From the NCBI GenBank assembly GCA_964304625.1, contig OZ199840.1, positions 177,795 through 241,794 on the forward strand: a DNA stretch of 64,000 bases, written 5' to 3'. Numbering within the stretch: position 1 is the first letter of the stretch; each line of letters starts with the position of its first letter. A program made the translations under genes and the position numbers. This document shows, piece after piece, positions 4,701 through 58,366 of this stretch. Under the pieces are notes generated by a model. It was not told the origin of the DNA. It ran no database searches and saw nothing but the letters and a program-made list of their open reading frames with translations. Source of the DNA: Kudoa neothunni (lineage: Eukaryota > Animalia > Cnidaria).

Positions 4701-7650
4701 ATGAAGATTCCTCTCGTCTTATTTAATATTCTGATTATATTTTTCTGTAATTTTATTACAATTGTCAAGGTATATTTAATCATTTGTAGTCATAAATAAG
4801 GATTCTGTGCATGCAGCTCCAGAGGCCTCTACCACACCTAATAAACAACTCTCATATAGCATAGCAGATAGAGAAAAATTGCATCTCACTTTATCTGGAG
4901 CGGTGTATGCTACCACAGGGAAAAAATGTCTTATAAGGAAAGGAAAAGAAGACAGTACTGATATTGAACAAATAACCCCATGTCCTGAAAGTGATGTTAC
5001 TGATGGAAATGGCAAATGCCTTCGTGCATGTTCCGGGAATGATATTAAACTTGCATTTAATGTCCTACCGCCTAGAACAAAATACATCTATGTATTTTCT
5101 GGGGATCAAGCTAATGCAATAAAAGATAAAAACAACGGCGGGGATGTGTTTGGGTTGGCAACTCGTATATCAATTTTACTAATTCAATAAAATAAATTAT
5201 AAATAGCACTCTTGGTTAATCCAGAAATGACAATTTCAACAGATGGTTCAAAAAATTAAAACTAGCAACTAAAACGTGCCCAAATGTTGCATGTCCTATT
5301 TTATACAAAGGTGTTGAATACGCCAGTGGTACTGCTGGTGGTACTTGTATAGTTGATAATGAAAATAATATGGTTGATTTTGATGTATTGATTCCTCATT
5401 ATGAGATGAAATGTACGAATTATCCGAGCTTTTTCTATCACATGCCAAATTCATATATGAAACAAAATATTGACATGTATAAACCTCAATATTATGTGAC
5501 CTACAAACATGGTGGGGGAGAAAAGAGAAATTACGTGCTTAAATTCCAAAATGCATTTCCCTCGGAAATTTGCCTCTTCCATATAAAGGATGCAGCAGGA
5601 AATGCTAATGGTAAAACAGCCAATTATACATCATCGTGTAATGCTGGAGCCGGGAAAAACTGTTATGCACCATGCGATAATGTTGAGTTGACACTTGCTG
5701 AAACTAAACCAATCGTAAAAATATTAATTCAAACTAGGCATCACAAGCTAGAAGCAACAAGTAGCGCCTTTGAAGGTTACGAAGAACGAAAATTTAGTAT
5801 AATTTTTAGTAATTGTGATATAATTATCGTTAATTATAGCTATCGTTGAGGCTGAAAATGAGAGCACACTTTTAACAACACATGCTACTACCGGAGTAAC
5901 ATTAAACCGATCCTTATTTAATCCAAATGGCGCAACTGTAAAATTCAATACTTGTGCATTTAAAGTCTTACCAGCCGATAAACTAAGAACCAGTGATGGA
6001 GTTGCTATTAAATGTTCGGATACGAACTGTGACAGTGAATGCTCAAAAAGCTCTGCTATTGGCGATTTGGCTCCAGGAAAAGCGTATATGATTGAAATAT
6101 CCGCGGGAAGCATAGATAATCACGAAGACTTCAAAGAATATTTATTTTTCAGAACAGGTATTGAAAGAGATAGATTACGTATGTCAAATATTTTTAGTTC
6201 AAAAACAAGGCTCAAACTTCGTCACTACAGTGCCTACAGCAACCGACGTGACTGCGACAGTCAAGGCGATCGACGGAACTGTGGAAACAGCAGCCACAGA
6301 ACCAACATGCTCATATTATATAAGTAAAACACGTAAGAACATTTTTGTGGAAGCAGAATGTGAAGATAGTAACCCATGCAGAGGATTTTGCAAAGATACT
6401 CAGAAACTGATAAATTTACATCCAAAAACAAATTATGATATTAAAGTCATTTCGGACAAAGATTACGGAATAAAAATATTCGAAAATGTTTCAACTAGTA
6501 AAAATTTGTTATTGCAATCTTGTTTAATTTATAATTATTAGCTTTATCGACCCTCACTCTATCTCTTAAATTCCCAGACAAAGGATTTCGAGTGGTCGGA
6601 ACGTTGGCAACTGCATTTCCAAAAGCAGTTTGTAGTTATAAAATTAAAGTCAAAAGTGGAATTAATTCAGAGATAGTTTATTCCTGTCCAACAGTTGATC
6701 CTCCTCCTTCACAGCACACTCCAACTACTACTGATACTGGCCAATCTTCCGAAAATGAAGAAACAGCAAAATCTAGGTTGATCAATGGGGCCAATTACCA
6801 CAATAATAGAATAGCAAGAGCAAGTCGTGGTGATGATATAACTCCAAGTTCATCTACGACCACTAAAATGTTACCGCTCCCGACGCAACAACTCAGTCTA
6901 AGTTCCCACCATGCAATAAATCACCATTATGTAGCAACATAATAATCAGTGAGGGTTACGAGGCTGATAAAGAATACCAAGTCTTGGTTACAGCTGTAGA
7001 CAGATCTGAAGAAATTACAATCGATATTCCTAAAAGTACAATATTTACCTACCGAATTATGAGGAGTTCTAATATATCACATATAAATAGATGCCCTACC
7101 TGAGAATCCCGAGGAAGTAGACAAACAAATCACAGTGATTATTGAAAGAGTTGGCGATATTTTAAAAATCACGTCATTGCTTCCGAAAGAACAGAAAGAA
7201 AATTCAGTGTGTCGATGGATATTAAAAAACATGAACGATCCTTCTTTGCCAATGGTGAAAAAATGTGGCACGGTTGGTAGCAATAGGTGTACACTTCCAA
7301 CATGCAAATCTTTCACAATTGAGGGCATAAGCGATATCAATGATTATAATTTAACGGTTATTCACTCCAGAGATCCTACAATTAAAGGCGTTGGAATAAT
7401 AAAACAAGGTAATTAACAATAATTAATTAACTCATAAATTTAGGAGAGACTTCCAATCAATCAAGGTAAAATTGTGCGAAAATAATATTAAATATCATTG
7501 ATTTATAGGGCCAGCACCAGCATGTATTAACACTACATTTGGTCGTGTCTGAATAAGATACCGTTTAGGATAATTAGGATTGTAATACCAATTGTTATAG
7601 TCGTTGTAACCGTTGGATTGTACTTTGGTTACAAGAAGAATATATCATAA
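4701..7650 (+). CDS. Cys-rich FN3-like multi-module type I membrane protein, family copy A (most divergent); 10 exons, two apparent -1 frameshifts in A-runs
   Basis: ATG 4701; signal peptide MKIPLVLFNILIIFFFINKDSVHA after removing intron 4747-4789. Exons are homologous to copies B-E with the same intron positions and phases. Micro-exons 7444-7465 and 7509-7523. TM IIRIVIPIVIVVVTVGLYFGY then KKNIS* (TAA 7648-7650). Frameshifts at ~5250-5255 and ~6865-6868. Confidence 0.8.
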
Positions 7651-7819
7651 GGATCGATCTTATCAATAATTTATTAATCTCACTAAAACAACGTTTTTTA
7701 CATATTAATATAAATTTTAATAATATTTTAAATCAATATTTGCGATACATATTATTGTTAATTGAACCAGTTTTATTCTGTGCAGAATTTTATTAAAATT
7801 TGTTAAGCTTATATTACAT

Positions 7820-8450
7820 ACTAGCGCTACTGACCAGCTTTGCCCGGGTACCATGTGATGGGAAATTTTAACTTTTATTTTTGTTTTGAATGGAGAAATT
7901 CTACGGAAGATTTCATCTAATTAGCACGTTAAACCCTGTAAATTTTAGTTTTTTGTTTTAATTGTTGCATTTTAAAGCTTGTCGTTATTTTTGCAATATG
8001 ATGATTTAGTTAAACAAAATTGTGTGCGCACTTTACATTCAAATATAAATAGAGGTATTGAGAGAATTAAATCAGTATTTTTAAGTTTATGTTTACAAAT
8101 TATTGACCAAAAATATGTCCTTAATTTTTTGAGCAATGTAATTAACGATTAAAGTTCATTTATTCACTATACAAAATCATTAAATGACTTAACTTAAATA
8201 GGACTCTTAGTTCTTTTAAAAATTTTTGCGATAAAAATTAACCTTCCTAGTTATAAAATTTATTATTAATCTACAAACGATTAAAAAAATAGACCTAAGA
8301 GGCGTCAGAAATAAAAGTATTAATTGTTACTCGTTTTTTTCAATTTTATAAAGGATGTTAATGATGCCTCAAAAAGCTGTAAGCGGTAACTTACGTATTC
8401 ATTACTTTAACGCAAATTTCCGATTTTTAAATAATGAAAATTTTCTTAGT
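7820..8450. repeat. Dispersed ~630-bp repeat, possibly a non-autonomous Helitron-like element; homologous to 62355-62990
   Basis: Colinear similarity to 62355-62990. Begins actagcgct...gctttgcccggg, resembling the reverse complement of a CTAG 3' end with an adjacent GC-rich segment. The repeat is clear; the class is tentative. Confidence 0.5.
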
Positions 8451-10701
8451 TTTTTTTTAATTTTTTTCAATAAAATCAAGCTCAAAATATTAATATTTTA
8501 ACCTGGAAACTCATTAACATGATTTGACCAGATTTCAAATTAATAAAAATTATAATTACAGTTAGAGTCACAAGAAACTAATTCAAATTTAATATATAAT
8601 GGAGAAAAATCTATTGAAATCACATAATTTTATAAAAATAAACGTCGGAAATCCTATTTTTTTCTCTAAAGCCGCAAACGAAATTCAAAAAATAATAAAT
8701 TCAGCTAATGACTTAAAATATCAAATAATTTCTGTCATAAATACTACCTATTAACTATAGTTAACGAAAATTAATTTAATCTCTTTTCTTCTTCAATACC
8801 ACGATGCCAATTATTGCAATAACCACAACCACAGCAACACATGCAATAATGATTCTAAAATCAGTTAATTCAATATATCAGCACTTAAAAATGTTTACAT
8901 AAGTTTTGTTTTATCCCTAAAAAATATTAAATTAAAGAAATCAGTTTACTAAGCTCACCCTGAACTACTCTTTGCTCCTACGATATATAACATTAAATTA
9001 CACTGTGAACAAATAATATACCTTGTTGTATGTCAGCACCGCCAAAAATTGTATCATCTTCGACACTGTAAACAGTCAAATAATAATCATTTCCATCAGG
9101 TAAATTATTTATTTTGAATTCTTTACAGGTCACAAAGGCTGCACATCTGTCTACGCTTCTTCCCATGCAAGATTTTACTACGGCATTTGACTTGACACTG
9201 CTGTTACGTAACTCCCATTTGCATTTTGATTTATCGTTCATACTGGATGGAACTGTGGTGGTTACAATGAAACTGTTCCCGTCACGTGTAATGACGACTG
9301 ATATCAATTTTGAGGAGTCAGTTGGGTTTAATTGTGGTGTACTAATATAAGTTTCGTTTAAGAAATTCTTAATAGAGACATTAATTGTAATACTTGATTC
9401 TATAATATGCTCTTTTTGTGAAGATTTTCCAATAGCTGTGACTAAAATTTTGTATGTATTTGCTGCTTCATACTCGGGAAATGTTATGGAACTGCAAAGG
9501 GGATTTGAAGAACATGTATTTGCGCTGTTCGCGACATCAGCAAGCTGTGTATCTGAAGTGCCCGGAACTGAAGATTTCGCTGCTGTCATTGGGCCACCAT
9601 CTGCTACTATTGGCACAGCGATTCTAGCTATGTTGAGATCTGCTGAACTTACACTGGGAGGAGCAGCTGAAGGGGGGTACTGGTGCTACTGGGGCGGTAA
9701 CAGGTGTCGTTACTTTCGGCACCACAGGACATGTGTAATAGTCTGTGTAATCGTTACCAGTCTTCTTTTGTACGACATAACTACAAGTTGCAGTTGGATC
9801 AACGGAATTTAATCTTGCCTTCAATGACAAACCATCCAAGGTGATCTTATGTGTTATCGTTAACGTTGTTAATGCTAATAAACAATTAAAGAGTAAATTA
9901 TAACTTCAATAACCTGTTCGTATATCTGTGTAATCTTTTATGTCGTAATCCTTATGTGCAATCACCCTGATGTCATAAGGTTTGTTTGGCTCGAGGTCTT
10001 CTATCGTAACTTGTTCACTACAAATTCCTCTACATGGGGTGTTGCCATTGCATTTCGCGTGGAAAAAGCTGTCCAATCCAGCCGGACTCACCAAATACTC
10101 ACAGGTAGGTTCGGTTTTCTTTTGTGCAGGGTCAGTTGTGATGGCAGCTATAGCTGTAAGAGAGACTGTAGTATCTGTTTTTGTAGGATCAGTAGTTCCA
10201 TACTCTTTACTTGCTCCCTTTTCTATATAATTTATTATTTTACAAAATAAATATATTGAATTACTTGTTCTTATGAATATTTGCTCTTGTAAATTATTTG
10301 GAATGGTAGTGCCTGTAAATGTGATCTCAATCATGTAGGCTTTTCCTGCTTCAAGTCCTTGAAGCACCCATTTTGTCGAACAATCAGCTTTGCACGAACC
10401 GCTACCGCTAGTGGAGGTTTCAACAGTGCACGTTGATGTTGTTGGAGATTGTGATGTGATTTTGTCTGCAAAATAGTGTTGAAGAGTACATGTATTGAAT
10501 GTTGGATTAGTTTTTCCTTGAAATACGGTACCATCAAACGTAACACCAACATTGGTATAAGAAGAAAGCAATCCTCCATCTGGTTCAGTAATCGCTAAAG
10601 AAAATAATAAAAAATGCTCGTTAACACTCCTACTGAGTTTGGGGTCAAAAGTGACCCCATAGAAAAGTTCATTTCTTAAAAGCTATAATGATCAGCATTA
10701 A

Positions 10702-13136
10702 CCGTCTAAAGAAGCAAAAAAAACTACCCTCCATTTAAATTGGAGTTAATATGACCCCAGATTTTTATTTGATAAATTTGATTAATAAATTTTTATAAAG
10801 TTATTGGTAAATTTTTGAATTATTTCTGTTAGTAGATTTTCGAATAAATTGATAATAAATAAGTAAAATTAATCCTTTTTAATCTCGATCGCAACATCGC
10901 GAGCTTCGTCGCACACTGTCGTAAAATTAATATCCTCAAGAATATCCACTTTTAGGATAAAAAATTGCATATCTATAATCTATATAAGAAAATAAATTAT
11001 ATAATTATATCCAAAGAGAATCTCTTTAATAATTAATTCAAACAATTGTAACATTTGTTGGATGAGTCTACTTGGCAATATGGTCTATTACAATTTGAAC
11101 AACGAAGGAAGGTTTTTTTTATCATTTCCACGAGGGACATAACTACATCGTGCTATTTGGTTTTTTACTTGGGAAACATTTGTAACTGATTCGGGGAAAG
11201 ATGATTTTCTTTTGACAACTTTGTTATTATTCAAATTTCGAGTGATTAATGGTTCGTAAAAAGCTTCAGCGATTTCTTTTGTAAAGATATGACGGGTTTC
11301 ATTTTGGCTATTAAAAATATTCTTGTATAATGCAAAAGCATTAATCAAGGATAGGTCGAGAATATTGAAAATGATTATCATTGGCTATCTGCGGTTGAAT
11401 CTGCGAACAGAAACTGAGGCAAGCATTCGGCCAATGGTGTCGACTCTACCCTTTGTTTTATTGTAGCAAATGATAACTTCGGATTTTTTGTGTGTGAGGT
11501 ATTGAGGATGCTAACATTAATGGTTCCAGTTGAGATTAAAATGACAGCTTTATCTTTTTTGTTGACATACGACGTTGATACATTTTTCTCAAACAAGAAA
11601 AAAGTTGTACCGTACAATTCCCTTTTTTTTGAAGCAAGCACAGAAGTTGGAAGTTCCCCTTTTTGTGGCGAATAGTACCCAAGTATGTCAATATTTTTTT
11701 GTAATAGCTTAGATGCAAGTGGACAAGAAGAAAAAAAATAATCAGGCACAATATTTCTTCCCGAATGATATATCGGTTCAGAGAGTGATAGGACAATACC
11801 TTTAGCAACATTTAGGATTCGTTCGTTATTTCCATTTTTATCCGGATACGGAGAGATATTTAAAACATACATTTTAATTGGGTCAACAAATAAAGAAAAC
11901 TTTAGGCCATACTTTTCTGGTTTCAAAGGCATATATTGCCTAAATGGACATCTTCCCTTGAACACAACCAACTACTTGTCAATTGTGAAGTTTTGATTTG
12001 GATAGAAACACTTTGGTAATTCTCTTGTCCACATTTCTCACACCTCACGTATTGGCAAAATTTATCCGTGGTTCTTCTCTCTGACCTAATTTTTATGTCA
12101 TCGAAATAAAGAGATCGTGAGATTTGGTAAAATCTTGTCCTTGAAAAAATTTGTCTATAGATTTCTCTGCCTTCAGACACACAGAACAATTCTGCCATTG
12201 GCTCTTCCTGATCCTTGTGAACAGACATAAGGATAAGAATGCCGAATTATCCATCAAAATCTGTGGAGTCGACGTCAGTCCAATTTTCATTAAAATGGCT
12301 ACGCCCCAAAATGTGTGTACATTCAATAATTCTCTCACAAATATTTGAAGTAAAAATTATGGAAAGACGGCCCAACATATTACAAACTCCCTGTAAACAA
12401 TAGGCCATAGGAACGGGATGCGAGTTCATTATATTTTCAGCTGATGTTTTAGAGATAACAGGTTTGGTTAAGCTCCAGGTGATTCCACCTTTACAAGTTG
12501 TGAAGCAATCGGTTTCCACAATTTCATCTGAAGATTCTTAAATTTCAGGCATAATGTCTTCAAACTCATTTCCTAACAATTCGCATTCACCACCACTCAT
12601 CGTCCCGCGAAAAAATTGCGTACAATGTTGAGGTTGCACATCCATTACTGTAATATAATGTTGAATAAAACATGATAATTGCTTTATCACATAATTTAAT
12701 ATACTTAAAATACAATGCGAAAAATATTATTTTCGTACTAACTCTTAAAGCAAACACAACGCTATTTTGTTAATTCAACGATCATGAATGAAATGAAGAT
12801 GCAGTAAGCCGATGAAGATTAAATGAGATTAATTAATGTATTTAATATCGTTTTACTCGAAATTCAACCATTAGAATTTTTTTTAATACGTTATCATTGT
12901 GATTATAAAAATTTATCAAATAAAAATCTGGGGTCAATATGACCCCAAAGTAATTGAAGGATAGTTTTCTTCATTAAATGTTACAGTCATTATTTTTTTA
13001 TTATTTTCCGTTTAAATTACCACTACGAAAATATAGGAGAATAGATAGAATCTTGTGACAAAAAGAAGAATCCTAACAAAGTTACTGGAAATCAATTAGG
13101 CTTTGAGGTCGTATTGACCCCAATGTCTTCAGAGGG
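10702..13136 (-). mobile_element. Full-length-sized piggyBac (PGBD4-like) with pseudogenised transposase, nested in the outer element
   Basis: TTAA at 10698-10701 and 13137-13140. TIR ccgtctaaaga vs ccctctgaaga. Inverted subterminal repeats 10745-10780 / 12910-12950. Transposase fragments 11088-12519 (FKGRCPFRQYMPLKPEKYGLKF; NILDLSLINAFALY). Confidence 0.85.
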
Positions 13137-13260
13137 TTAAAGCCTCAAATTTATCGTTGTTAATCCATCTCTATATATGTCATTTGATATGCTAAAGTAT
13201 CGTTATTAAATTTGAACCTATTCCATTTTTATTCACGTATTAACTTAAATTCACCTTTAA

Positions 13261-14175
13261 CCCTCGAAGGAAGGTGCTCGGAAAAATTCCACCGGGAACG
13301 ATGGGGCTCATTTTTGACCACAGTAATTTTAGCTTCTTATTGCGACTATGCGTATCAAATCTCATAATTACAATCAAAACGTTTAAAAACTAGTAATCTA
13401 TTTATTTCATGCTGAAAATAATTTATTTAACATAAAAAATGTAATAACCCCGCAGAATGAATGTTATATGCATACGAACAAATGTGACATGTATAAAACA
13501 AATCACTATCACGTACATCAAAATATACCAGAGTCTATCGCAGCAGGACAAAAAATAACAACGTTAAAACGCGTTTAAGGCACAAAACTCAGGAGTGACA
13601 TGATGACAGTATTACATCACGAGGCCCGATGAATAACGTCCATCTGGATGTTGCGGTTCTAGCTTCATTGTACATTTCTTTGTTTATGTTGCTAAAATAT
13701 TTAATCACAAGGCGAGAATAATTATATTAGTTTATTATTTACATATATTATCTATTTATTTAAAAAATTATTTTTCCATTACCTCTTGATTTTTTAAAGT
13801 ATTCCGTACATTGATAAAACACAAGTATTTATTACTAAAGATTCGATACATTTATTTCGACTATATATGTAAAAACTCAAACCATTCTACGGAGATTACA
13901 AGAAATTAAAACGATATAATAACTTAAGTTGTACCACAAATCGAGGAAATGTCTAAATTGGGGTCATTTTTAACCCTCAAATAATGAATTATATTGTAAC
14001 ATTAACAATTCGACATAATAAATAAGTTTAAATTTTATCTTTGACACTAGAATCTTTCTAATGTTTTAGACCCTTCTAAAATTTTCTAGAAGGATCCTGA
14101 ATTGCGGTAGGCATAACACGACCCCCTGGGTCGGATCTTGCCCCATGATGTTCCATTCGGCCATCGGAAGTGATA
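13261..14175 (+). mobile_element. Third, internally deleted piggyBac-like element inside the intron-3 insertion (right end uncertain)
   Basis: TTAA 13257-13260 followed by ccctcgaagga, the same start as the 40648 element. Short transposase-like remnant near 13430-13470 resembles the reverse complement of 121-150. A ggggtc...ccc motif lies at ~13960. Confidence 0.5.
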
Positions 14176-16555
14176 ACAAATCTACTATAGAACTCATCTA
14201 TTTGTGATAGATTTGGGATTTGGTTCCTCTCTAAGGTATTTTAAAAGCCAAACTAATATTAATTTATCCGTAAATATAAAGTTGCCATATTTATACCCAA
14301 GTTTAATAACTGTTAACGTTAGACTTACAATTAGAAACATCACCAGTTATTAAATATGGCTAATAATATTTAGAAAATTTGTAGGAATAAAGCATATGAA
14401 TTAACAGAAATATGCGGTGTCACACAAGCTATACAAACTGAACAATCAATAAAATTGTAGAAGGAAAATTCTTTATTTATATTTTTTTGAATGGCGCTTA
14501 TTATAACCAGGTTAGTCCTACTTTAAATAATAAAATTACTTCGCTACAAACTACCTGATTCAATCATATATACAAAAATCTATTGAAAAATGAGCAATTT
14601 AATTTATTAATTCGTTTGTGAAAAATCAAGTTCGAAATATATTCTGCCTTTTTCTTTTGTATTTGAAAAATAATTGCTAAACCAATCAAACATGTAATTC
14701 CTCCACATGATGTGTAATTTTAACCACAGCGGATACTGAAAAGCAAAAAATTGATAACGGGTGATTTGTTTTTAATAAATATTTGATCGAAACGTACTTA
14801 TTTGTACATACTGACCCCACGCTGTTTGTCCTATTTATCACCATATCCGTGCAGTACCCAAAAAATCAAATTTATATCTTTTATTAAATTTTGTTTAAAA
14901 TGCAATGCAATGCAATTAAATTTATATTAATATTAAATTCTTTTGAAATAATTGCTTCCAGACTTGTAATCAAATTTTTTTTATAAAAATCTGTCTCCGC
15001 AAAGATATAATTGTCCACCACTGAACATGAAGAAAATATAATGTTAGTATAATTGAAGAAATTTCAAACAAATATGACACAGGAAACGTTGCCAACAAGA
15101 CTCAAATTTCGCGAAAAAGAGGTTTAAATTAAAGGGTAAAATGTTCCATTTGCCCAAGAGAGCATCATAACAAACATTCAACTCGCCACTAAAATTGTAT
15201 GAAACCTATGTTTAACCCACATATACCGATATAATGTGGAAGTTGCATCTAAAATTAAAATTGATTATATTTTAAAAATTATAATTTTTCTTATTTTTGA
15301 TGGAGTAATTATTCATAAAACTACTATTTCTATCCTGGGGTCAAAAACGACCCCAAACTCATTTAAAGGGGAAAATCGTCGACTCAGTACGAGTGTTAAT
15401 AGAAGTATTACCATATTTAATTTTCGCGTAGCCGTCAAAATTAACAGTGGCTTGTATGTCGTGATGTCTGGTTTGGATCAAAATACCGTAAATTACTTTG
15501 CCTGTAATACCATTTAACACAACATCCTTACACGGAGCATAACAGCTTTTAACGTTACTACCACAAACAGACTTGTATGATTTATCGGTTGCTGTGTCCA
15601 GTCCATCTTTAAGACTGAACAAGCATATTTCAGACGACGGGGAGTTTGTGAATTTTATTCCCACCTTATTATCAGTTTTGGCAACAATATAAAACTGAGG
15701 CTCATAAATCGCTAAAGTTTTCTCCATATATTTATTGGGCATATTGTAGAAGAAGCTAGGATAATTTACACACCTTACTTCGTAATGAGGTAGCAATAAA
15801 TCAAAATCAACTATATTTTTAGTATTTTCGGCAATACAAGTGTCTCCTGCGGTACCATCATCATATTTAATATCTTTGTAATAAATAGGACAATTTACGC
15901 GTGCACAAGTTTTCGCCACCAATTTCAGCTTATTTGGGTCGGTACTGCCTGTAGACAGAGATACTGTAAATTGTGGATTAGCCAATAATGCTAAATTCGA
16001 TTGAGTTTTATATTAAATAATAATTATTTACGTATCGAATATCCGAATACTTTTGATTCTGCTCCTTGAGTTTTGGTTTTAACGGCAGCTGTGTCAGTGC
16101 CATCGTAGACGTAAATGTATTTTGTTCGTGGTGATAGCTGATCGTAGTTGACTTTATTGTCATCAGTATTACAAACGACAACACATTTATTAGCATCTCC
16201 ATCAGTATTGTCATGGGGAGGGCAGCTTGCGATGTCTACAAACGTATTTGCTGTTCCTGAACCACCAACTGATATTTCTGCTTCTTTAGATCGCATTAAA
16301 CGGCACTTTTTGCTAGCTCCATAATCGGAACCTTCAAGTTTGAGTTTAATTTTGTAGTCACCAGTTGTTTCCTTTACAATCTGGTATTTCAGCGTTTTCG
16401 TTGGAGGCGCAACTGCAGGTGAAGCTGCACCAGGAGAACCTGGATTTCCATTAGCATTGGCTGTGCTTGATATTAAAACACCTAAACTTACATTAGTATT
16501 AAAATTAACTCAGGAAGATACCTAAAACAAGGTAGAGAAATCCAACTATCCTCAT

Positions 16556-17034
16556 GATTGACAATTAAATGACCTACCAATTGATGATTCTGAATACAAT
16601 TGACCCGAATTTCACTCAATTGTGGATATAATGATTCATTCATTGTCAGATAGCAAAACTTAGAATAGACAACAATTATTCAAATGACTAAAAAATTAAT
16701 CTAAACTAATTTTTTGCCATAAAACTCAAATTGGTGTGGTAAATTAATTATGACATTTTAAGGAATAGAAGTTTTCACACGATATATTTTTTTAAGATAA
16801 TGTCGAAGTAAAATATTAAGCATTAGCAAAATAATCAGGCAATGCACTTTCGTGTATTCGTTCGTGTTAGTTTTTTTACGAATTAATTACCATGCCTAAA
16901 TTTTGGCACGAAATACGGACGAAATTTATTTTAACTATAAATTCCAATCTTGAATCGCGAAGGAAATCGAATTCATGGGTTTTATATGGGGAGGTTTAAT
17001 TTTTGGCACATATCGAAATAATGACTCAATAAAT
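16556..17034 (-). promoter_or_regulatory. Conserved upstream block of copy B, duplicate of 20068-20544
   Basis: Near-identical to the copy C upstream region over ~470 bp. The first ~200-280 bp are also conserved upstream of D and E. Regulatory function is inferred from position and conservation. Confidence 0.55.
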
Positions 17035-17067
17035 ACTACCTATTAACTACAGTTAACGAAAACTAAT

Positions 17068-20067
17068 TTAGTCTCTTTTCTTCTTCAATACCACGATGCC
17101 AACTATTGCAATAACCATAACCACAGCAACGCATGCAATAATAATTCTAAAATCAGTTAATTCAAATATCAGCATTTAAAAATGTTTACATTAGTTTGGT
17201 TTTATTCCTAAAAAATATTAAATTTGATAAAAGCATATTATTAAGCTCACCTTGAACTACTCTTTGCTCCTACAATACATAACATTAAATTACATTGTGA
17301 ACAAATAATATACCTTGTTGTATGTCAGCACCGCCAAAAATTGTAGCATCTTCAACACTGTAAACAGTCAAATAATAATCATTTCCATCAGGTAAATTAT
17401 TTATTTTGAATTCTTTACAGGTCACAAAGGCTGCACATCTGTCTACGCTTCTTCCCATGCAAGATTTTACTACGGCATTTGACTTGACACTGCTGTTACG
17501 TAACTCCCATTTGCATTTTGATTTATCGTTCATACTGGATGGAACTGTGGTGGTTACAATGAAACTGTTCCCGTCACGTGTAATGACGACTGATATCAAT
17601 TTTGAGGAGTCAGTTGGGTTTAATTGTGGTGCACCTAATATAAGTTTCGTTTAAGAAATTCTTAATAGAGACATTAATTGTAATACTTGATTCTATAATA
17701 TGCTCTTTTTGTGAAGATTTTCCAATAGCTGTGACTAAAATTTTGTATGTATTTGCTGCTTCATACTCGGGAAATGTTATGGAACTGCAAAGGGGATTTG
17801 AAGAACATGTATTTGCGCTGTTCGCGACATCAGCAAGCTGTGTATCTGAAGTGCCCGGAACTGAAGATTTCGCTGCTGTCATTGGGCCACCATCTGCTAC
17901 TATTGGCACAGCGATTCTAGCTATGTTGAGATCTGCTGAACTTACACTGGGAGGAGCAGCTGAAGGGGGTACTGGTGCTACTGGGGCGGTAACAGGTGTC
18001 GTTACTTTCGGCACCACAGGACATGTGTAATAGTCTGTGTAATCGTTACCAGTCTTCTTTTGTACGACATAACTACAAGTTGCAGTTGGATCCACGGAAT
18101 TTAATCGTGCCTTCAATGACAAACCATCCAATGTGATCTTATGTGTTATCGTTAATGTTGTTAATGCTATTAAGAATTTAAAGAGTAAATTATAATTTCA
18201 ATAACCTGTTTGTATATTTGTGTAATCTTTTATGTCGTAATCCTTATGTGCAATCACCCTGATATCATAAGGTTTGTTTGGCTCGAGGTCTTCTATCGTA
18301 ACTTGTTCACTGCAAATTCCTCTACATGGGGTGTTGCCATTGCATTTCGCGTGGAAAAAGCTATCTAATCCGGTTGGACTTATTAAATACTCACAGGTAG
18401 GTTCATTTTTCTTATCTGCAGATACAGTTGTGGTAGCAACCGTAGCTGTAAGAGAGACTGTCGTGTCTGTCTTTGTAGGATCAGTAGTTCCATATTCTTT
18501 ACTTTCTCCCTTTTCTTTATAATTCGTTATTTTTTAAAATTAATATAATAATTTACTTGTTCTTATGAATATATATTCTTTAAAATCACTTGGAAGATTG
18601 TCGCCTGCAAATGTGATCTCAATCATGTAGGCTTTTCCTGCTTCAAGTCCTTGAAGCACCCATTTTGTCGAACAATCAGTTTTGCACGTAGTGCCAGTGG
18701 AGGTTGCAGTGGTGCATGTTGATGTTGTTGGTGATCCTGATGTGATTTTGTCTGCAAAATAGTGTTTAAGAGTACAACTATTGAATGTTGGATTAGTTTT
18801 TCCTTGAAATACGGTACCATCAAATGTAACACCATCTTTGGCGTAAGAAGAAAGCAATCCTCCATCTGGTTCAGTAATCGCTAAGGAAAATAAAAAAACT
18901 CCCATTAATATAAGTATTACCATATTTAGTTTGTTTGTAACCTTCCAAACTAGCACCGGCGGATTCTATGTTGTGATGCCTTGTTTGGATCAAAATATCA
19001 TAAATCAACTTGCCTTCAATACCGTTTAACACAACATCCTTACAAGGAGCATAACATTTTTTAGCAGTATCACCACAAACTGAAGTATATTGTGAACTTT
19101 GTTCTGCAATCTTAGTATCTTTAAGACTGAACAAGCATATTTCAGACGATGGGGAATTGGTGAATTTAATTCCCACTTTGTGTTCAGCGTTGGCAACAAT
19201 ATAAAATTGAGGATTATAAATGGCTATGCTTTCCTTCATATATTGATTTGGCATATTGTAAAAGAAACTGGGATATTTTTCGCATCTTAATTCGTAATGC
19301 GGTAACAATAGATCAAAATCAACTTTATTAACGTTTTCGGTATTACAAGTGTTCGTAGTGGCAGCATCTGTATATTTAATATCTTTATAATAAATGTGAC
19401 AATTTACGGGCGCACAAGTTTTTGCACCGAATTTCAGCTTATTACTATCGGTAGTGTCGATGGACACGGCAATTTGTGGATTAGCCAATAATGCTAAGTT
19501 TTAATGATTTTTATATTAAATTTAATCTATTTACGTATTGAATAACCGAACACTTTTGATCCCGCACCTTGAGTTTTATCTTTAACATCAGCTACGGTAC
19601 CACCTACGTAGACGAATATGTATTTGGTTCTTGGTGACATCTCACTGTAATCAAAATCATTTGTATCAGTGTCACAGTTGACAACACATTTACCATTAAG
19701 AGTAGAATCATTAACTTTAGCAGCGCAGCTGTTGATGTCCGTAAACGCAGCTGCCGTTGTTGTACTCCCGGCACCCCCTGCAATTTCTGCTTCGTTAGAT
19801 CGTCTTATAAGGCATTTTTGGTCAGTTCCATATTCAGAGCCTTCCAATTTGAGTTTAATTTTGACTGGGTTAGGATTTAATCCTTTGACAATCTGGTATT
19901 TCAGAGTTTTCGTTGGAAGCGCAACTGCAGGTGAAGCTGCACCAGGAGAACCTGGATTTCCATTAGTATTGGCTGTGCTTGATATTAAAACACCTAAACT
20001 TACATTAGTATTAAAATTAACTCAGGAAGATACCTAAAACAAGGTAGAGAAATCCATCTGTTCGCAT
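17068..20067 (-). CDS. Family copy C, intact; 871-aa type I membrane protein with ~7 Cys-rich FN3-like modules
   Basis: Exons 20067-20034, 19993-19535, 19493-18921, 18880-18557, 18514-18206, 18166-17687, 17634-17314, 17269-17251, 17207-17190 and 17146-17068 total 2616 nt with an open frame and GT-AG introns of 39-52 nt. Signal MRTDGFLYLVLGVLISSTA; TM IIIIACVAVVMVIAIVGIVVL-KKKRD*. Confidence 0.9.
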
Positions 20068-20544
20068 GGTTGACAATTAAATAAACTACCAATTGATGGT
20101 TCTGAATACAATTGATCCGAATTCCACTCATGTGGATATAATGATTCATTCATTGTCAGACAGCAAAACTTATACTAGATAATAATTATTCAAGCTATTA
20201 AAAAATTAATCTAAACTAATTTTTTGCCATAAAACTCAAATTGGTGTGGTAAATTAAATATGACTTTTTAAGGAGTAAAGTTTTCACACGATATATTTTT
20301 TTAAGGTAATATCGAAGTAAAATATTAAGCTTTAGCAAAATAATCAGGCAATGCACTTTCGTGTATTCGTTCGTGTTAGTTTTTTTACGAATTAATTACC
20401 ATGCCTAAATTTTGGCACGAAATACGGACGAAATTTATTTTAACTATAAATTCCAATCTCGAATCGCGAACGAAATCGAATTTATGGGTTTTATATGGGG
20501 AGGTTTAATTTTTGGCACATATCGAAATAATGACTCAATAAATT
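20068..20544 (-). promoter_or_regulatory. Conserved upstream block (5'UTR/promoter) of copy C
   Basis: Shared with the B, D and E upstream regions (caattg repeats, gtggatataatgattcattcattgtcaga, ctcaaattggtgtggta). Confidence 0.55.
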
Positions 20545-20606
20545 TTATACTTGTAATAAATCAATCCTTAAGAAAGCAATAAAAAATATTGAATGAAATC
20601 TATATA

Positions 20607-22574: not shown

Positions 22575-24177
22575 CAGTATTTCAAGACCTAAATGCAACT
22601 GCGTCCGATCAAAATGCAACCCCATGCAATAATGTCAAAAAAAGGAAATATGTTATCTTAAGTGATGATATGAAACAAATCGCAGTTTCACTCTCTGAAG
22701 TTCATAACCTTTTTCGTATAATTTCAAATTATTTCTAGAATCGACACTAACGAATACATTGCCGAGAAAATGGGTGTACATAAATCAACCATTGGGGGAA
22801 TTTTGAAGCAAAAACCGATGGATACGGAATTAAGGGCACCAAAAAAGAAAGGGGGGTGACAGATGGTCAAAATAGACTGAAACCCATAAATTATACATCC
22901 ACAAATTCGTGGACAAGGATTGTACCATTACATTAAATTCTATTACCGAAAAAGTTCTAGAATATTTTGGTATTAACGTTTCTCGTCAAACGATTGTGAA
23001 TTGTTTGAAAGATTTCCATTGTACCTCTAGAAAGAAATTCTTAGGATTGTTTTGAAACGAGAAAAAGGTATATTGTCATTTTAAAAAATTGCTCAAAAAT
23101 GAATAGATACGTGCTACCAATATCTTGAATTGAAGCCTCGTCATTCTACTGTCATCTATGTAGACGAATCAGGTTTTTCTTTGTCAATGAGAAGAACGTT
23201 TGGATGAGCACTTTCAGGGCCATGAGCGAACCTGAAATTGAAAAGCATTCGCTCTAAAAATATTACTTTAATCGCGGCCATAAGCTCGGAACGAGTGTGG
23301 GGCATTCCACGTAGAAAATGGAACTGTTAACCATCAAGTTTTTTCTATTTTCATAGATAAACTATTTTCCGACTTAAGTCGCAATGGGGTTGATAACGCC
23401 TTACTAATAATGGGCGATGTGAGATTCCACAAAATGGATCTAGTAAGGAACCAAATTCAATCTACAAACCATAGGTTATTATTTCTTCCATCATACTCTC
23501 CGCTCCACAATCCTATTGAAGAGTTCTTCCATAAAATTATGTCCATTGTAAGAAACAAGGGACCATCTAATCAGGAAGAAATTGATCAACGCAATTATGG
23601 CTAGCTCGGATGGAGTTTCTAATTACTAACTACAAAAATATGCGAATCATGCGGAATCCTATTTCGCAGCATGTATGTATTAATTCGGAAGAAATTAACA
23701 ATTAGGTTAATTTTACGTTTTTCTAAAAATATGAAGTTTAAATTGATTCCAATTAATATGTGACTTTTGTGTGTTGATGCCAATAAGATTACAAGTTTAA
23801 TAGTGGTAATTAAAGAAGCAGTAAAATCTTACATTGAAACAGTACATTTTTGAGAAGCGTAAGTATTGAAAATGTGACACCGTGATTAAATCTATGAGAG
23901 AAATGAATAAAAAATTAATTCTTTTATTTATTTTAAATAAATATGCATAAACTCTATGAGTGAAAAAAATTATTTGACGCGATTCGTTAATCACTTGTAT
24001 AAAATTCGAAAAATTATTCACTCTACCATAACTAACCATGTAGAATATTGTCAAAAAATATCTTAATTTGATACAAATTAAATCAAAAAATAAGTGAGTT
24101 GTTTATTTAAAAATTTGCATTTTGATTCGACATAACGGTTATCCGCGCGCTGGTTGCATTTAGGTCCTGAAATACTG
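22575..24177 (+). mobile_element. IS630/Tc1-like (DDE_3) transposon with pseudogenised transposase
   Basis: ~25-bp TIR cagtatttca(a/g)gacctaaatgcaac at both ends with TA flanks. Motifs VIYVDESGF, NITLIAAIS, MGDVRFHK and FLPSYSPLHNPIEEFF; stops and frameshifts. Confidence 0.9.
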
Positions 24178-37023: not shown

Positions 37024-37028
<5 letters not shown>

Positions 37029-40400: not shown

Positions 40401-40443
40401 GGAAGATACCTAAAACAAGGTAGAGAAATCCAGCTATTTTCAT
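37431..40443 (-). CDS. Family copy D; intact except one +1 frameshift in a homopolymer in exon 3
   Basis: ATG 40443 (MKIAGFLYLVLG|VLISG). Exon ORFs 39406-39864/39234-39443, 38897-39289, 38561-38890, 37973-38494 and 37648-37962. Same micro-exons and TM-KKKRD*. G5 at 39412-39416 turns CYAPCK into CYAPM*. Confidence 0.85.
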
Positions 40444-42880: not shown

Positions 42881-43256
42881 CAAAGAAATATTTTATGTAT
42901 ACATAATTAATCTTTTTAAATGAATTCGAAGTTTACGAAAATATATTTGACGATGATAACGCTGCAACGTGTGAGAATCGAAATAATGACAGACTTTTTT
43001 ATAATGGGTTTTTTATAATAAATATTGACAAACGAAGGTTTGTCAATATTGAAGGTGTCAAAAACGAGGATGTAGAGATAGGCTAAGAACATTTCCGGCA
43101 AAACAGATAGAGAGGTTGGATACGTTAGGTTTTCATAATCAATTAGTATCCGAGGAAGAAAGAAACAAGCAATTTTTCAAGGATAAAATCAATGTCGTGA
43201 CCGATTATTTAGTTATTTATTTATCTACTGCGTATGCAATAGGCGGAATTTAAAAC

Positions 43257-43796
43257 TTGTTCAATTGGTGTTTCTCTCAGCAGCAAATTATAGTTAAAAC
43301 CAAACTAATAACTACAATCAAGCATATCGCAGAAAATACCGTATATCCAATCAATAAAGTATATGATATTGCAACTAATCAAGAAGATTTCCAAAAATTG
43401 CTAAATATTCCCAAAAAGTCCGTTTATCAAGTGATTGGGGATATAAGAAAACGAAAGAGCATTGATTTAAATCCTGAGAAAAATCTTTGCGGATCGATAA
43501 TGACCTTAAGAAACATAAATTTTTGTATATACGATTCTGGATCTGAGGGTAGTAATAGAATTATTATTTTTGCAACAGAAGAAAATCTTTCGCACTTAAA
43601 ACATTCCAAATTCTGGGTTTGCGACGGAACGTTCAAGGTTGTTCCGAAAACGTTCTTCCAAATGTACACAATTCATGGTCGCGTTTTTAACAAACTTTCT
43701 TACCTATTACATACAAAACCCCTTATCTTTGACAAATTCGTTATCGCATGCGCCTTTAGCCACCCATGGGTTTATATTACGGGTTTTTTACTTTAG
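43257..43796 (+). mobile_element. MULE (Mutator-like) transposase fragment
   Basis: RIIIFATEENLSHLKHSKFWVCDGTFKVVPKTFFQMYTIHG is the typical first-catalytic-Asp region of MULE transposases; truncated afterwards. Confidence 0.85.
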
Positions 43797-49089: not shown

Positions 49090-50461
49090 AAAACTATAGA
49101 ATACCATTAAGATTATATCCTATAAGCTATTATCTTGATAAAACGACAGCTGCTTGCAAAAAATTTGAGTACAGTGGGCCGGTGGGACTACCTTCAATAA
49201 CTTCCCGTCGTTAGAAGAATGCAACAAAGAATGTACTTAAAATTAATTTTACACTCCTACAATAATTCTTTTGAATATGACTACGCTAGTCGCGTTGATG
49301 TTTGCACAGCTGATCTTCAAGTCGATGGGACAAACGACTTCAATGTATATGAAAAAACTCAAGTAAACAGATATTATTTCAAGAGAGCTTCCGGTGGTGG
49401 TACAGGAGAATGCAAAACATATAATTATAAGGGATGTAATGAGCCAAATACTCATTTCCAAGTGGGGACGCATGTAATGGCAACTGTATAAGTAATTAAT
49501 TATTTATTTTTACTGTTATTAATCGAAAATGCAACTAATTAATCTCAAAAAATACTTAACAGAGTTGATTGCCAAGCGTGAGTTATGTTGAACTCCGCTG
49601 CAACTGGTACCGAAAGAGAAATCAAGATCGTAAGGGACAAGGAAAAGTCCACTTGTGTTCATGCGATTGTAAACAAAAGAGATGGATTACGTGGAGTCTT
49701 TGATTTATTTTCTCAATGCCAAAAGAAGTGTCAGGGTAACTCTAAAAATTAAAATATATGAACTCAGTATGTAAATTTAGCTGATGACGCGGCTATTAAA
49801 AGATGCAAATATGACCCATACCAACCAACCACCGAAGGGCACATGACAACCAAATATTATTATAATTCTACAAACCAGTTATGTATGCAAATGATGGCTG
49901 TTGATATTGAAGTAGATTCAACCAAAAATTGTTTCGATACAGCTGGAGAATGTATTAGTGCCTGTCCAGCTCGTATGTTTCTGTTATAACCTAAAATTAT
50001 ATTATTTAATTTTTAAAGTTAACGACGATCCAACAGAAACCAATTTTCCCGATATATCCCCCGTATGCAGCGAACCAAAAGAATCTGGTAATGGAAATGA
50101 AGCAAGCACACTACCAAGATGGTACTATAATGATACACAAAAGGCGTGTAAACGATTTGCATATACTGGAATTGGTGGAAAAGCGAACAACTTTAAAAGC
50201 GAAGCTCTTTGCGATTACCTTTGCATTGAAGGAATGACTGAAATTACTTTACCCGAACTAACAACTACCCCGGTACCTACAACTGAGACTACAACAACTT
50301 CTACAAGTGACGACGAATCTGAATCAACCTCTTCCGATACCCCTCCTGACTCACAAGTGGCTGAGGATATCGATAACCATGAAGATAAAACAAGTGAGCA
50401 CCAGCCCGCTGAAGCAGGGGAGGAAACCGAACAGCTGGATAATGCCCAACATACGATATAA
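49090..50461 (+). pseudogene. Multi-domain (about 5) Kunitz/BPTI-like protein with Thr/Ser/acidic tail; several indels and a stop; 5' end not identified
   Basis: Last exon CSEPKESGNGNEASTLPRWYYNDTQKACKRFAYTGIGGKANNFKSEALCDYLC. Upstream exons give YYLDKTTAACKKFEYSG..NNFPSLEECNKEC, RYYFK..ECKTYNYKGC..HF..GDACNGNC, TCVHAIV..VFDLFSQCQKKC and KYYYNSTNQLC..NCFDTAGECISAC, separated by short GT-AG introns. Confidence 0.75.
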
Positions 50462-55366: not shown

Positions 55367-58366
55367 TTAATCCCTTTTCTTCTTCATTACCACGATACCA
55401 ACTATTGCAATAACCACAACCACAGCAACGCAAGCAATAATAATTCTAAAATCAGTTAATTCAAATATTAACATTTAAAAATGTTTACATTAGTTTGGTT
55501 TTATTCCTAAAAAATATTAAATTTGATAAAAGCATATTATTAAGCTCACCCTGAACTACTCTTTGCTCCTATAATATATATAACATTAAATCACACTGTG
55601 AACAAATAATATACCTTGTTGTATATCAGCACCGCCAAAAATTGTATCATCTTCAACACTGTAAACAGTCAAATAATAGTCATTTCCATCAGGTAAATTA
55701 TTTATTTTGAATTCTTTACAGGTCACAAAGGCAGCACATCTGTCTACGTTTCTTCTCATGCAAGATTTTACTACCGCATTTGACTTGACACTACTGTTAC
55801 GTAACTCCCATTTGCATTTTGATTTATCGTTCATACTGGATGGAACTGTGGTGGTTACAATGAAACTGTTCCCATCACGTGTAATGACGACTGATATCAA
55901 TTTTGAGGAGTCAGTTGGGTTTAATTGTGGTACACCTAATATAAGTTTCGTTTAAGAAATTCTTAATAGAGACATTAATTGAAGCATTAATTGTAATACT
56001 TGGTTCTATAATATGCTCTTTTTGTGAAGATTTTCCAATAGCTGTGACTAAAATTTTGTATGTATTTGCTGCTTCATACTCGGGAAATGTTATGGAAATG
56101 CAAAGGGGATTTGAAGAACAGGTGTTTGCGCTGTTAGGCATCCTCAGCAAGCTGTGTATCTGAAGTATCCGGAACTGAAGATTTCGCTGTTGATATTAGA
56201 CCACCATCTGCCACTATTGGCACAGCGATTCTAGCTATGTTGAGATCTGCTGAACTTATACTGGGAGGAGCAGCTGAAGGGGGTACTGGTGCTTGGTGCT
56301 ACTGGGGCGGGTAACAGGTGTCGTTACTTTCGATACCACAGGACATGTGTAATAGTCTGTGTAATCGTTACCAGTCTTCTTTTGTACGACATAACTACAA
56401 GTTGCAGTTGGATCCACGGATTTTAATCGTGCCTTCAATGACAAACCATCCAAGGTGATCTTATGTGTTATCGTTAACGTTGTTAATGCTATTAAAAAAT
56501 TAAAGTGTAAATTATAACTTCAATAACCTGTTCGTATATCTGTGTAATCTTTTATGTCGTAATCCTTATGTGCGATCACCCTGATGTCATAAGGTTTGTT
56601 TGGCTCAAGGTCTTCTATCGTAACTTGTTCGCTGCAAATTCCTCTGCACGGGGCGTTACCATTGCATTTCGCGTGGAAAAAGCTATCTAATCCGGTCGGA
56701 CTTATTAAATACTCACAGGTAGGCTCTTCTTTCTTTTCTCCCGTTGAAAGTCCGGCCATAGCTGTAAGAGAAATTGTTATGTCTGTTTTTGTAGGATCAG
56801 TAGTTCCATATGCTTTACCATCTCCGATTTCTTTACAATACATTATTTTATAAAATAAATATAATGATTCACTCGTTCTTATGAATATATGTTCTTTAAA
56901 ACCTTGTGTAATATCAGTGCCTTCAAATGAGATCTCAATCATGTAGGCTTCTCCCGCTGAAAGTCCCTGAATTACCAATTTTGAGCAATCAGTGTTGCAA
57001 GCGGTGCTGCTCTGGGTGGTACATATTGTGCCGGTCAGGGTGGCTGGCTTTGGTTTATCAGCAAAATAATGTTGAAGAGTACATTTGGTCATTTTTGGCG
57101 CTAGGGTCCTCTTTTAATGAGGATCCATCAAACGTTACACCATCTTTGACATAAGAAGAAAGCAACTCTCCAGCTGCTTCATTAATTACTAAAGAAAATA
57201 ATAGAAAAATTCAGATGAATGTAAGAATTACAAAACTTAGTTAGTTCGTAGCCTCGCAATACTCCACTAGTAGCTGTTATGTCGTGATGCCTTGTTTGGA
57301 TTAAAACTTTATAAATCTTTTTCCCCGCAATGCCATTCAGTTCGACGTACTTACAAGGGGCGTAACAACTCTTTCCGGTTCCACCACAAACTGAAATATA
57401 TGATGGGTTGTTTGCTGCGTTCTGGCCATCTTTAAGACTGAATAGGCATATTTCAGATGATTGCGAATTAGTGAATTTGATTCCGACTTTGCCCGCAGTT
57501 TTGTCTACAATATAAAACTGGGGTTCGTAAATGGCTATTTTTTCCTTCATATATTGATTGGGCATTTTGTAAAAGAAGCTGGGATATTTACCGCACCTAA
57601 CTTCGTAATGCGGTAACAATAAATCAAAGTCAACTTTATTATTATTGTTTTCGGAACTACAAGTGTTCCCTTTGGTACCAGTTTCGTATTCAATATCTCT
57701 ATAATAAATAGGGCAATTTACAGGTGTACATGTTTTTGCTACGAATTTAAGCTTATTGTCGGTAGTGTCTGCAGACACCGTAATTTGTGGATTAGCCAAT
57801 AATGCTAAATCCATTTTATTATTTTGAAAAATTAAGTTGATTTACGTATTGAGTATCCGAATACTTTTGACCCTGCCCCGTTAATTGCGTTTTTAACATT
57901 ATCTATGCGATCGCCCGACGAATACATATATGTATTTGGTTCTTGGTGATAGGTTGTCATAAGTGATTGCATTTCCATCAGTTGAACAATCGATAACACA
58001 TTTATTAGTAGTACTAGCATCATTAGGAGGGCAGATTGCGATGTCTACAAACGAATTTGCTGTTTCAGAAGTATTAGCTAAAATTTCTGCTTCTTTAGAT
58101 CGCTTTATAAGGCATTTTTGCTAGCACCATAATCAGAACCTCCGAGGTTGATTTTAATTTGGTCTGGGCTATTAGTTTCACCTTTCACAACCTGATACTT
58201 GAGCGTTTTCATTGGAGTTAGAGTAGGAGATGCCTCCGCAGCTGCAGAATCTTGACTTATAGCAGCATTGGTTTTTCTTGACGTTAAAACACCTGAATAT
58301 ACATCAGTACTAAAATTAACTCATGATGATACCTAACGCAAGGTAGAGAAATCCAACTATTTTCAT
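55367..58366 (-). pseudogene. Family copy E, multiple frameshifts
   Basis: ATG 58366 (MKIVGFLYLALG). Exon ORFs 57182-57814, 56520-57092, 56256-56453, 55911-56150 and 55586-55900; TM-KKKRD*. Indels near 58115, 57920, 57110, 56290-56310 and 56140. Confidence 0.85.

Follow-up and report, generated by a model that had tools for sequence, protein, structure and literature searches.

A several-hundred-member family of fibronectin type III-like rod genes in the myxozoan Kudoa neothunni: a candidate variable surface repertoire

A family of genes in the cnidarian parasite Kudoa neothunni, five members of which lie at 4701-58366 of a 64,000-nucleotide stretch of chromosome 3 (177,795-241,794 of contig OZ199840.1, assembly GCA_964304625.1; the whole stretch is 'the window' below), invites comparison with several described systems. 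Cytokine receptors are type I membrane proteins; domain 1 of the class I receptors is a fibronectin type III (FN3) domain stapled by four cysteines, as the modules encoded by the Kudoa genes would be. The Alr proteins of Hydractinia, also a cnidarian, are known as clustered single-pass paralogues, with beta-sandwich domains barely recognizable from their sequence and with variable distal domains. The taeniid oncosphere antigens EG95, 45W and TSOL18 come from a metazoan parasite: they are proteins with FN3 domains, secreted or at the surface, and their genes form small families with several exons each. The var, rif/stevor, VSG and Pneumocystis Msg families, like the Kudoa family, number hundreds of arrayed copies, many pseudogene-like, with conserved ends, a variable core and segmental recombination. 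Finally, the VSPs of Giardia and Spironucleus, and the VSP-like genes of Sphaerospora molnari, form large parasite families with the plan proposed here: signal peptide, variable ectodomain, conserved transmembrane helix and basic tail of about five residues (10.64898/2026.02.11.705288).

A preliminary description of the window spoke of a 'five-copy family'; genome-wide exon counts make this too small by about two orders of magnitude. A search of the genome with exon 3 of the best-preserved copy, copy C, yields 476 candidates. Of these, 150 were scored, each with an E value between 5e-142 and 4e-48, so the similarity is not chance; these 150 cluster on all three chromosomes. A profile of exon 7 finds 309 candidates. 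On these counts of about 300-480 exon copies, the family is taken to have several hundred members. In about 30 genes fetched from the genome, the six module exons follow one another in one unchanged order and span about 2.6 kb, and 20 of the 30 genes are open, at full length, in all six. They fall into four subfamilies (I to IV) by the residues of the tail: KKKRD/KKRG; KKKN/KKKH/KKKK; YKKNKS/YKKNIS, which includes copy A of the window; and WKNKN. Protein identity between subfamilies is 35-55%. We favor the view that this family is a new variable type I surface coat or host-interface repertoire of the parasite, with a probability of about 0.5; the odds are no better than even because the claim is built on genome sequence and models, and because K. 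neothunni lives inside muscle fibers.

The five paralogues of the preliminary description were all located among the six-frame open stretches of the window, amid transposon remnants, and their coordinates and strands fixed (Table 1): copy A is on the forward strand, copies B to E on the reverse. Copy C is the sole window copy with all exons open as assembled, and carries the gene model. A single short GT-AG intron suffices to bridge each junction between its successive open frames; introns 1 to 9 measure 40, 41, 40, 42, 39, 52, 44, 43 and 43 nt. The ten-exon layout reported earlier thus holds, with 871 codons; each window paralogue has ten exons and GT-AG introns of 39-52 nt. The six module exons (2-7) are multiples of 3 nt long, and all are phase 1-1. 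In copy C, no direct in-frame GT-AG splice exists between exon 7 and the transmembrane exon; therefore, both intervening micro-exons are required. Their splice sites are kept in four subfamilies, and an indel in subfamilies III and IV preserves whole codons; the support for the micro-exons as real is thus comparative. Upstream, the 5' flank of copy C is 94% identical in nucleotides to that of B, 91% to that of D and 86% to that of E. All searches and folds in what follows were run on single exons or on natural open frames.

Exon 1 and the start of exon 2 together would encode a signal peptide (in copy C MRTDGFLYLVL, then G-VLISS); close variants are found in B, D and E, and that of copy A is different but hydrophobic. 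Seven modules follow, one each in exons 2, 4, 5, 6 and 7, and two in exon 3. At the far end, exon 10 encodes a transmembrane helix and a basic tail of 4-6 residues, KKKRD in B to E and YKKNIS in A. The signal peptide, helix and tail described earlier are therefore all present, and the tail is, as was said, too short for a signaling domain; its length is the same 4-6 residues in all four subfamilies, which leaves no Box1/Box2 region.

The exon alignments give every module exactly four cysteines and a Tyr-containing strand motif at its end; the four-Cys pattern and the module-end motifs quoted in the preliminary description (MSPRTKYIFVY, for example) are real. The spacing Cx3C is found in 31 of 32 exon-2 copies, 45 of 47 of exon 3, 31 of 34 of exon 4 and 33 of 36 of exon 5. 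The tyrosine, a candidate for the F-strand tyrosine corner of FN3, is invariant in every module alignment. The B-strand tryptophan had been called absent. It is, from modules 1-6; exon 7 has a Trp in 31 of 32 copies (in CKWEL or CRWIL). Module 6 carries an insert rich in Pro, Thr, Ser and Ala between its second and third Cys, about 40-90 residues long across copies; in copy C, 56% of it is S, T, P or A. Two disulfides per module would be expected from the four invariant cysteines. The protein would then be a type I membrane glycoprotein, presumably glycosylated: a signal peptide, a rod of seven FN3-like modules with a mucin-like loop in the sixth, and a transmembrane helix with a short basic tail that would hold the rod in the membrane, with no signaling domain.

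The label 'Cys-rich' overstates the case: the ectodomain of copy C has 28 Cys in 871 residues (3.3%), four per module, and CxxC occurs in two of 36 exon-5 copies and in no other exon. This differs from the VSPs, which have more than 10% Cys with many CXXC; the Kudoa fold is FN3-like, and each gene has ten exons. The suggested likeness to Giardia VSPs is thus analogy only, and the same is true of Hydractinia Alr (see below).

Structure prediction gives the modules a place among the beta-sandwiches. Models were built for exons 2 and 3 only, so that assignment to the FN3 fold by structure concerns modules 1-3. The exon-3 model, from 51 sequences, is all-beta with a mean predicted local distance difference test (pLDDT) score of 77.7. 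Its best Foldseek matches in the PDB are two-domain cytokine-receptor ectodomains (IL-17RA, gamma-c, IL-7Ra, G-CSFR and gp130; E from 7e-5). With VIA-align, residues 85-190 match gp130 D5, 10Fn3 and monobodies (Z 7.6; root-mean-square deviation (rmsd) 2.5-2.9 Å over 80-86 residues), and residues 1-80 match Ig-like sandwiches (Z about 7.3). In the ESM Atlas the best match is a gp130 homologue (TM 0.57). The exon-2 model, from 24 sequences, has pLDDT 71 and pTM (predicted TM score) 0.67. Foldseek finds nothing better than E 0.15 for it; an exhaustive VIA search places at the top FN3 domains of IFNAR1, IL-20R2, IL-23R/IL-12Rb1, prolactin receptor and gamma-c (Z 5.4-6.9), with residues 28-152 on IFNAR1 SD3 at Z 6.9 and rmsd 3.3 Å over 93 residues. 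Pfam fn3 (PF00041, of the E-set clan) scores exon 5 of copy C at 23.7 bits, below the gathering cut-off of 25, and has no match for copy C exons 2, 3 and 6. At E ≤ 0.01 it detects nine of 16 exon-5 members (best E 2e-5), one of 26 exon-4 members and none of 28 exon-7 members; an exon-5 profile finds FN3 domains of titin (2.7e-5), NCAM2 and Dscam. The agreement of independent modules and methods makes the FN3-like reading persuasive, and the models support modules that are FN3-like beta-sandwiches, as had been proposed.

How the modules relate to one another is a separate matter. MAFFT lays distant exon-5 sequences on exon 4 with the Cys and Tyr columns in register, an alignment that shows these two modules to share one pattern. 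A comparison between the profiles of exons 5 and 7 gives E 0.008 and a probability of 4.8%; homology among the modules is therefore argued from the shared Cys/Tyr pattern, not from statistics. Joint folding of exons 3-5, or 4-5, on a mixed alignment was dropped, as the distant exon-5 rows lying over exon 4 spoiled it.

Four-Cys FN3 modules had been called atypical; they are less so than claimed, as class I cytokine-receptor modules normally have four cysteines in their first domain. For exon 2, and for exon 3 taken as a two-domain unit, no structures match better than the cytokine receptors (gp130, gamma-c, IL-7Ra, G-CSFR, IL-17RA and IFNAR1). At 5-15% identity, no sequence-level match was found; WSxWS is absent from 212 Kudoa exon translations; the tail, at 4-6 residues, has no room for Box1/Box2; and Kudoa has hundreds of paralogues of seven modules each, where the receptors have a ligand-binding pair and a stalk. 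A shared fold is claimed, and not membership of the cytokine-receptor family, because there is neither WSxWS nor a cytoplasmic domain.

The family appears to be confined to Kudoa and its relatives. When a profile built from 18 diverse exon-3 sequences was run against 1.84 billion representative proteins, it gave only 20 matches; the ten that were looked up are unnamed singleton open reading frames on short ENA or Logan contigs, from at least four samples (SRR31175926, SRR33849685, ERZ795007 and ERZ28624939). One relative, a 4.6-kb contig with 17% GC, has these module exons in the same succession, with 26-38% identity; its presence implies relatives in other, probably myxozoan, genomes. Restriction to this group is thus supported by the searches, as the preliminary description expected of a lineage-specific family. 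In the SRR33849685 relative, the equivalents of exons 2 and 3 are contiguous in one open frame, without the approximately 13 extra residues that read-through would give; intron 2 seems to be absent in that species. A protein search with a 445-residue natural open frame (exons 3-5) returned nothing at E ≤ 0.001, weak evidence in that its length window of 245-779 would miss a protein of about 870 residues.

That the family is not a described one, as was also supposed, agrees with the papers searched: none was found to describe an FN3 surface family of Kudoa or other myxozoans, and the K. neothunni genome paper of Weber, Paulini and Blaxter, with its supplement, makes no mention of gene families, surface proteins or fibronectin (PMC12239612). 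Its annotation, with a count of 5,316 genes, used protein hints from other species (PMC12239612). Hints of this kind cannot seed models of an orphan family whose introns are 40 nt long and which has micro-exons. From Sphaerospora molnari, papers report VSP-like, RIFIN/STEVOR-like and ETRAMP-like genes; none of these is the family treated here (10.64898/2026.02.11.705288; PMC11792419).

Divergence within the family is polarized along the gene. Among close paralogues, amino acid identity is 55, 71, 62, 80, 82 and 90% for exons 2 to 7 in turn, and the ratio of nonsynonymous to synonymous divergence (dN/dS) is 0.67, 0.24, 0.70, 0.30, 0.47 and 0.39; dS itself drops from 5' to 3', from 0.75 in exon 3 to 0.13 in exon 7. 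The order, with exons 2 and 4 most variable and 5-7 most conserved, is repeated in two further arrays. Over the three, members of one array share 55-76% identity in exon 2 and 60-66% in exon 4, versus 90-96% in exon 7. Inside a subfamily, exon 7 averages 90% identity; between subfamilies, exon 3 is the best conserved part.

Identity is also mosaic. Compared in sliding windows of nucleotides, C and D are about 91% identical in the 5' flank and 64-84% in exons 2-4; identity then jumps to 100% from about 18400 to 18140 (C coordinates), intron included, and remains at 92-100% onward to the stop codon. C and B are 100% identical over about 18075-17480. Exons 5-7 have a word depth of 100-400 in the source runs, versus 3-20 for exons 2-4. 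The identical introns and low dS argue for gene conversion of the 3' part, and not for selection alone. Sorted by modeled secondary structure, exon-2 codons have dN/dS of 0.92 outside strands and 0.33 in strands, and exon-3 codons 0.35 and 0.13. By these values (0.13-0.33), strand codons are under purifying selection; the exon-2 loops fit relaxed selection, or diversifying selection that falls short of proof.

The favored reading joins these observations as follows. Tandem duplication enlarges the family; segmental gene conversion keeps the 5' flank, the signal exon and exons 5-10 near-identical; the membrane-distal cassette, modules 1 and 4 above all, diverges, chiefly in its loops; recombination anchors at the conserved ends would allow this cassette to be shuffled; and the rods, on what would be the parasite plasma membrane, would serve immune evasion, the binding of variable host ligands, or both. 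Like variant antigens in general, the family is large, with a variable part exposed in the predicted topology, a conserved anchor and segmental recombination.

Several points weigh against a variable surface repertoire. Overall dN/dS is below 1 everywhere, a range that does not demonstrate positive selection. As assembled, four of the five window copies have frame breaks, as do 10 of the 30 sampled copies. The tails of subfamilies I and II match the KKXX pattern for retrieval to the endoplasmic reticulum (ER). The models come from paralogue-only alignments with pLDDT of 71-78, and Z values of 5-7.6 are in the middling range of the tool. K. neothunni develops inside muscle fibers, where antibody pressure should be low. 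Lastly, support for a coat function comes from genome sequence and predicted models. The genome paper reports very few parasite transcript reads (PMC12239612), and in a metatranscriptome run filed under the host's label no read matched, a result that bears on expression neither way.

A stronger form of the surface-repertoire reading supposes a true antigenic-variation or variable-receptor system in a cnidarian parasite: several hundred FN3-rod genes, with recombination anchors in the 5' flank, signal exon and exons 5-10, in which hypervariable modules 1-4 are swapped and one or a few members are expressed per plasmodium. We put this forward tentatively, as a possibility with the odds against it. 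Antigenic variation has been reported in other myxozoans (10.64898/2026.02.11.705288). The var, rif/stevor, VSG and Msg systems have unrelated folds and demonstrated switching, whereas the Kudoa family is described here from its genes; and they are mostly expressed from subtelomeric sites, whereas Kudoa arrays are also internal to chromosomes. A subtelomeric location is not claimable: many arrays are internal, and chromosome 3 has no telomere repeat at its start, which lies 178 kb from the window. The taeniid antigens, compared by description only, are alike as FN3-domain proteins of a metazoan parasite gene family and differ in having one or two FN3 domains and a handful of genes; we know of no four-Cys pattern, polarized divergence or conversion-homogenized anchor among them.

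A different perspective locates the partner of the rods on other Kudoa cells. The family would then be a repertoire for cell-cell adhesion or self/non-self recognition, in which rods bind each other or a partner, between primary and secondary cells or between neighboring plasmodia, and variation serves kin discrimination; cnidarian allorecognition and Dictyostelium Tgr are the models. Cnidarians do have polymorphic recognition receptors clustered in the genome, the tandem beta-sandwich array has a variable distal part, and a short tail suits pure adhesion. Known allorecognition, however, uses allelic polymorphism at few loci, not hundreds of paralogues on three chromosomes. Alr, compared here by description and not by sequence, comprises about 40 genes in one complex; its domains are V-set/I-set-like Ig domains and its long tails bear ITAM/ITIM-like motifs, neither of which is seen in Kudoa, where top matches are FN3 and tails have 4-6 residues. 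We regard this perspective as unlikely.

To suppose a constitutive structural coat seems to us doubtful to a like degree. In this account, the proteins form a glycocalyx or a spore or valve layer, copies are multiplied for dosage or as stage versions, and the variable modules are under relaxed constraint. Disulfide stapling of the rod and its mucin-like insert would be apt in a protective layer, exon 3 is kept across all subfamilies, and dN/dS is at most 1 in all partitions and about 0.9, close to neutral, in the exon-2 loops. Relaxed constraint alone leaves unexplained why modules 1 and 4 are variable in three independent arrays while exon 3, between them, is conserved; and dosage rarely yields hundreds of copies diverged by 50-75%.

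Residence in the ER or early Golgi, with a role in the secretory pathway or an internal membrane and the C-terminus as a di-lysine (KKXX) retrieval signal, is very unlikely. KKKRD, KKRG, KKKN, KKKH and KKKK all keep Lys at -3 and -4 while other positions vary; subfamilies III and IV, however, end in YKKNKS, YKKNIS or WKNKN, neither KKXX nor KXKXX, and KKXX, present in two of four subfamilies, was rejected as a family-wide feature. A few basic residues after a transmembrane helix are an ordinary stop-transfer signal too, and a variable ectodomain of seven modules is hard to explain in a resident ER protein.

Least of all do we expect the family to be mostly dead DNA, decaying duplicates or mobile-element cargo with no present function: the frame breaks counted above, a region full of piggyBac, pogo and Tc1 elements and a published repeat content of 45.6% (PMC12239612) lean that way, but two thirds of the sampled copies have no break in six exons with about 2.5 kb of coding sequence in all, splice sites, cysteines and micro-exons are conserved at 35-55% identity, strand codons are under purifying selection, the repeat unit has no transposase and consists of head-to-tail tandem duplicates with their own conserved 5' flank, and some breaks lie in homopolymers of a low-coverage assembly, one of them contradicted by reads.

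The breaks in the individual window copies differ in kind. Copy E looks like a pseudogene: its frame breaks, at least four in all, fall in exons 2, 4 and 6. Copy D has a single break, a C5 run at 39412-39416 in exon 3 with one extra C; two contigs of one source run omit one base at 39412, which would restore the frame, and the break may be an assembly error. Copy A is broken at an A-run near 6865-6868, within the low-complexity insert of exon 6, and copy B at a C6 run (versus C5) at 9672-9677, also in exon 6. The breaks in A, B and D are all one-base length changes in A or C homopolymers. Such changes may be truly inactivating, or may be errors of assembly where coverage is low; single breaks of this kind are uncertain because the published assembly was built from about 7x HiFi coverage (PMC12239612). 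Copy A is 32-46% identical to copy C in exons 2-5 and 7, and its tail type matches that of an array on chromosome 2 (9.79-9.87 Mb). Copy B is 99-100% identical to copy C in exons 6-7, and is split by a transposon inside intron 3. This complete-looking piggyBac element sits in what is otherwise a 40-nt intron; it has an internal DDE_Tnp_1_7 open reading frame (11381-11971, E 1.8e-21), and suggests recent transposition in the K. neothunni genome.

Other elements and genes of the window are listed with the copies in Table 1. An open reading frame at 43254-43793, a MULE transposase by appearance, has no Pfam match. 

Table 1. Positions (window coordinates) of the gene copies, the exons of copy C and neighboring elements
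Feature	Position	Strand	Remarks
Copy A	4701-7650	+	divergent subfamily III member, tail YKKNIS; ATG, signal peptide and tail read
Copy B, 3' part	8776-10620	-	exons 4-10, transmembrane helix, KKKRD tail
Copy B, 5' part	15400-16555	-	exons 1-3; whole copy B is 8776-16555
Copy C	17068-20067	-	10 exons, 871 codons
Copy D	37431-40443	-	
Copy E	55367-58366	-	
Copy C, conserved 5' flank	20068-20500	-	block recurs upstream of B (16468-16991), D and E
Copy C exon 1	20034-20067	-	signal-peptide start, phase 1 donor
Copy C exon 2	19535-19993	-	rest of signal peptide, Pro/Ala/Ser-rich tip, variable FN3-like module 1, 4 Cys
Copy C exon 3	18921-19493	-	modules 2 and 3, tandem beta-sandwich pair, 8 Cys
Copy C exon 4	18557-18880	-	module 4, variable, 4 Cys
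Copy C exon 5	18206-18514	-	module 5, nearest to FN3 by sequence
Copy C exon 6	17687-18166	-	module 6 with insert of about 70 residues, Pro/Thr/Ser/Ala-rich, between Cys 2 and Cys 3
Copy C exon 7	17314-17634	-	membrane-proximal module 7, near-invariant Trp
Copy C exon 8	17251-17269	-	19-nt micro-exon
Copy C exon 9	17190-17207	-	18-nt micro-exon
Copy C exon 10	17068-17146	-	transmembrane helix, KKKRD tail, stop codon (coding 17146-17071 and stop)
piggyBac-type transposon, 4,771 bp	10625-15395	-	TTAA target duplication, at 10621-10624 and 15396-15399; inverted ends matching at 13 of 14 bases
piggyBac DDE_Tnp_1_7 remnant	31584-31946	+	Pfam
piggyBac DDE_Tnp_1_7 remnant	61646-62032	+	Pfam
Candidate piggyBac-like open reading frame	204-500	-	by appearance only
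Tc1/mariner DDE_3 remnant	23284-23601	+	Pfam
pogo/Tigger DDE_1 remnant	25750-26376 (within 25254-26376)	+	Pfam
Protein arginine methyltransferase gene fragments (conserved housekeeping)	33960-36123	+	PRMT_C E 2e-8; amid family copies
Kunitz/BPTI protease-inhibitor gene, then acidic Thr/Ser/Glu-rich tail	49201-50458	+	one module, Pfam E 2.4e-16; between copies D and E

The genome in which these arrays lie is 40,260,978 bp as assembled, in three large sequences of 17.15, 12.04 and 11.05 Mb and an 18.2-kb mitochondrial contig; the published account gives 40.2 Mb, an N50 of 12.0 Mb, three chromosome scaffolds, a circular mitochondrial genome, GC content of 30.41% and a median intron of 49 bp (PMC12239612). 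It also places a (TAAACC)n telomere at one chromosome end only (PMC12239612). In our own count, the end of chromosome 2 carries 90 GGTTTA units, its start has two stray copies of each motif, and the remaining four ends have none; the five scaffold ends without a repeat array may stop short of the true chromosome ends. The mitochondrial contig (18,219 bp) has a GC content of 44% versus about 30% for the nuclear sequences, and uses TGA for Trp; its cox1 (2629-4005, reverse strand) and cob (7805-8830, forward strand) are very divergent, and ARAGORN finds no transfer RNA in its first 10 kb.

Myxozoans, Kudoa especially, cause large losses in fisheries and aquaculture through post-harvest liquefaction of muscle, and one species causes food poisoning; to our knowledge, almost nothing is known of myxozoan surface molecules. 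At about 2.6-3 kb per gene, 300-480 copies would make up roughly 2-4% of a 40-Mb genome, and would add several per cent to the published gene count. Should the proteins prove to lie on the parasite surface, work on the host interface, on diagnostics and on immune evasion would have its obvious candidates in them, and the antigenic variation reported in other myxozoans would gain a first molecular handle open to testing. The family would be a case of an FN3 rod turned into a diversifying repertoire by conversion-anchored divergence of a cassette; and if the antigenic-variation reading is true, it would be, as far as we know, the first repertoire in the style of var or VSG in a metazoan.

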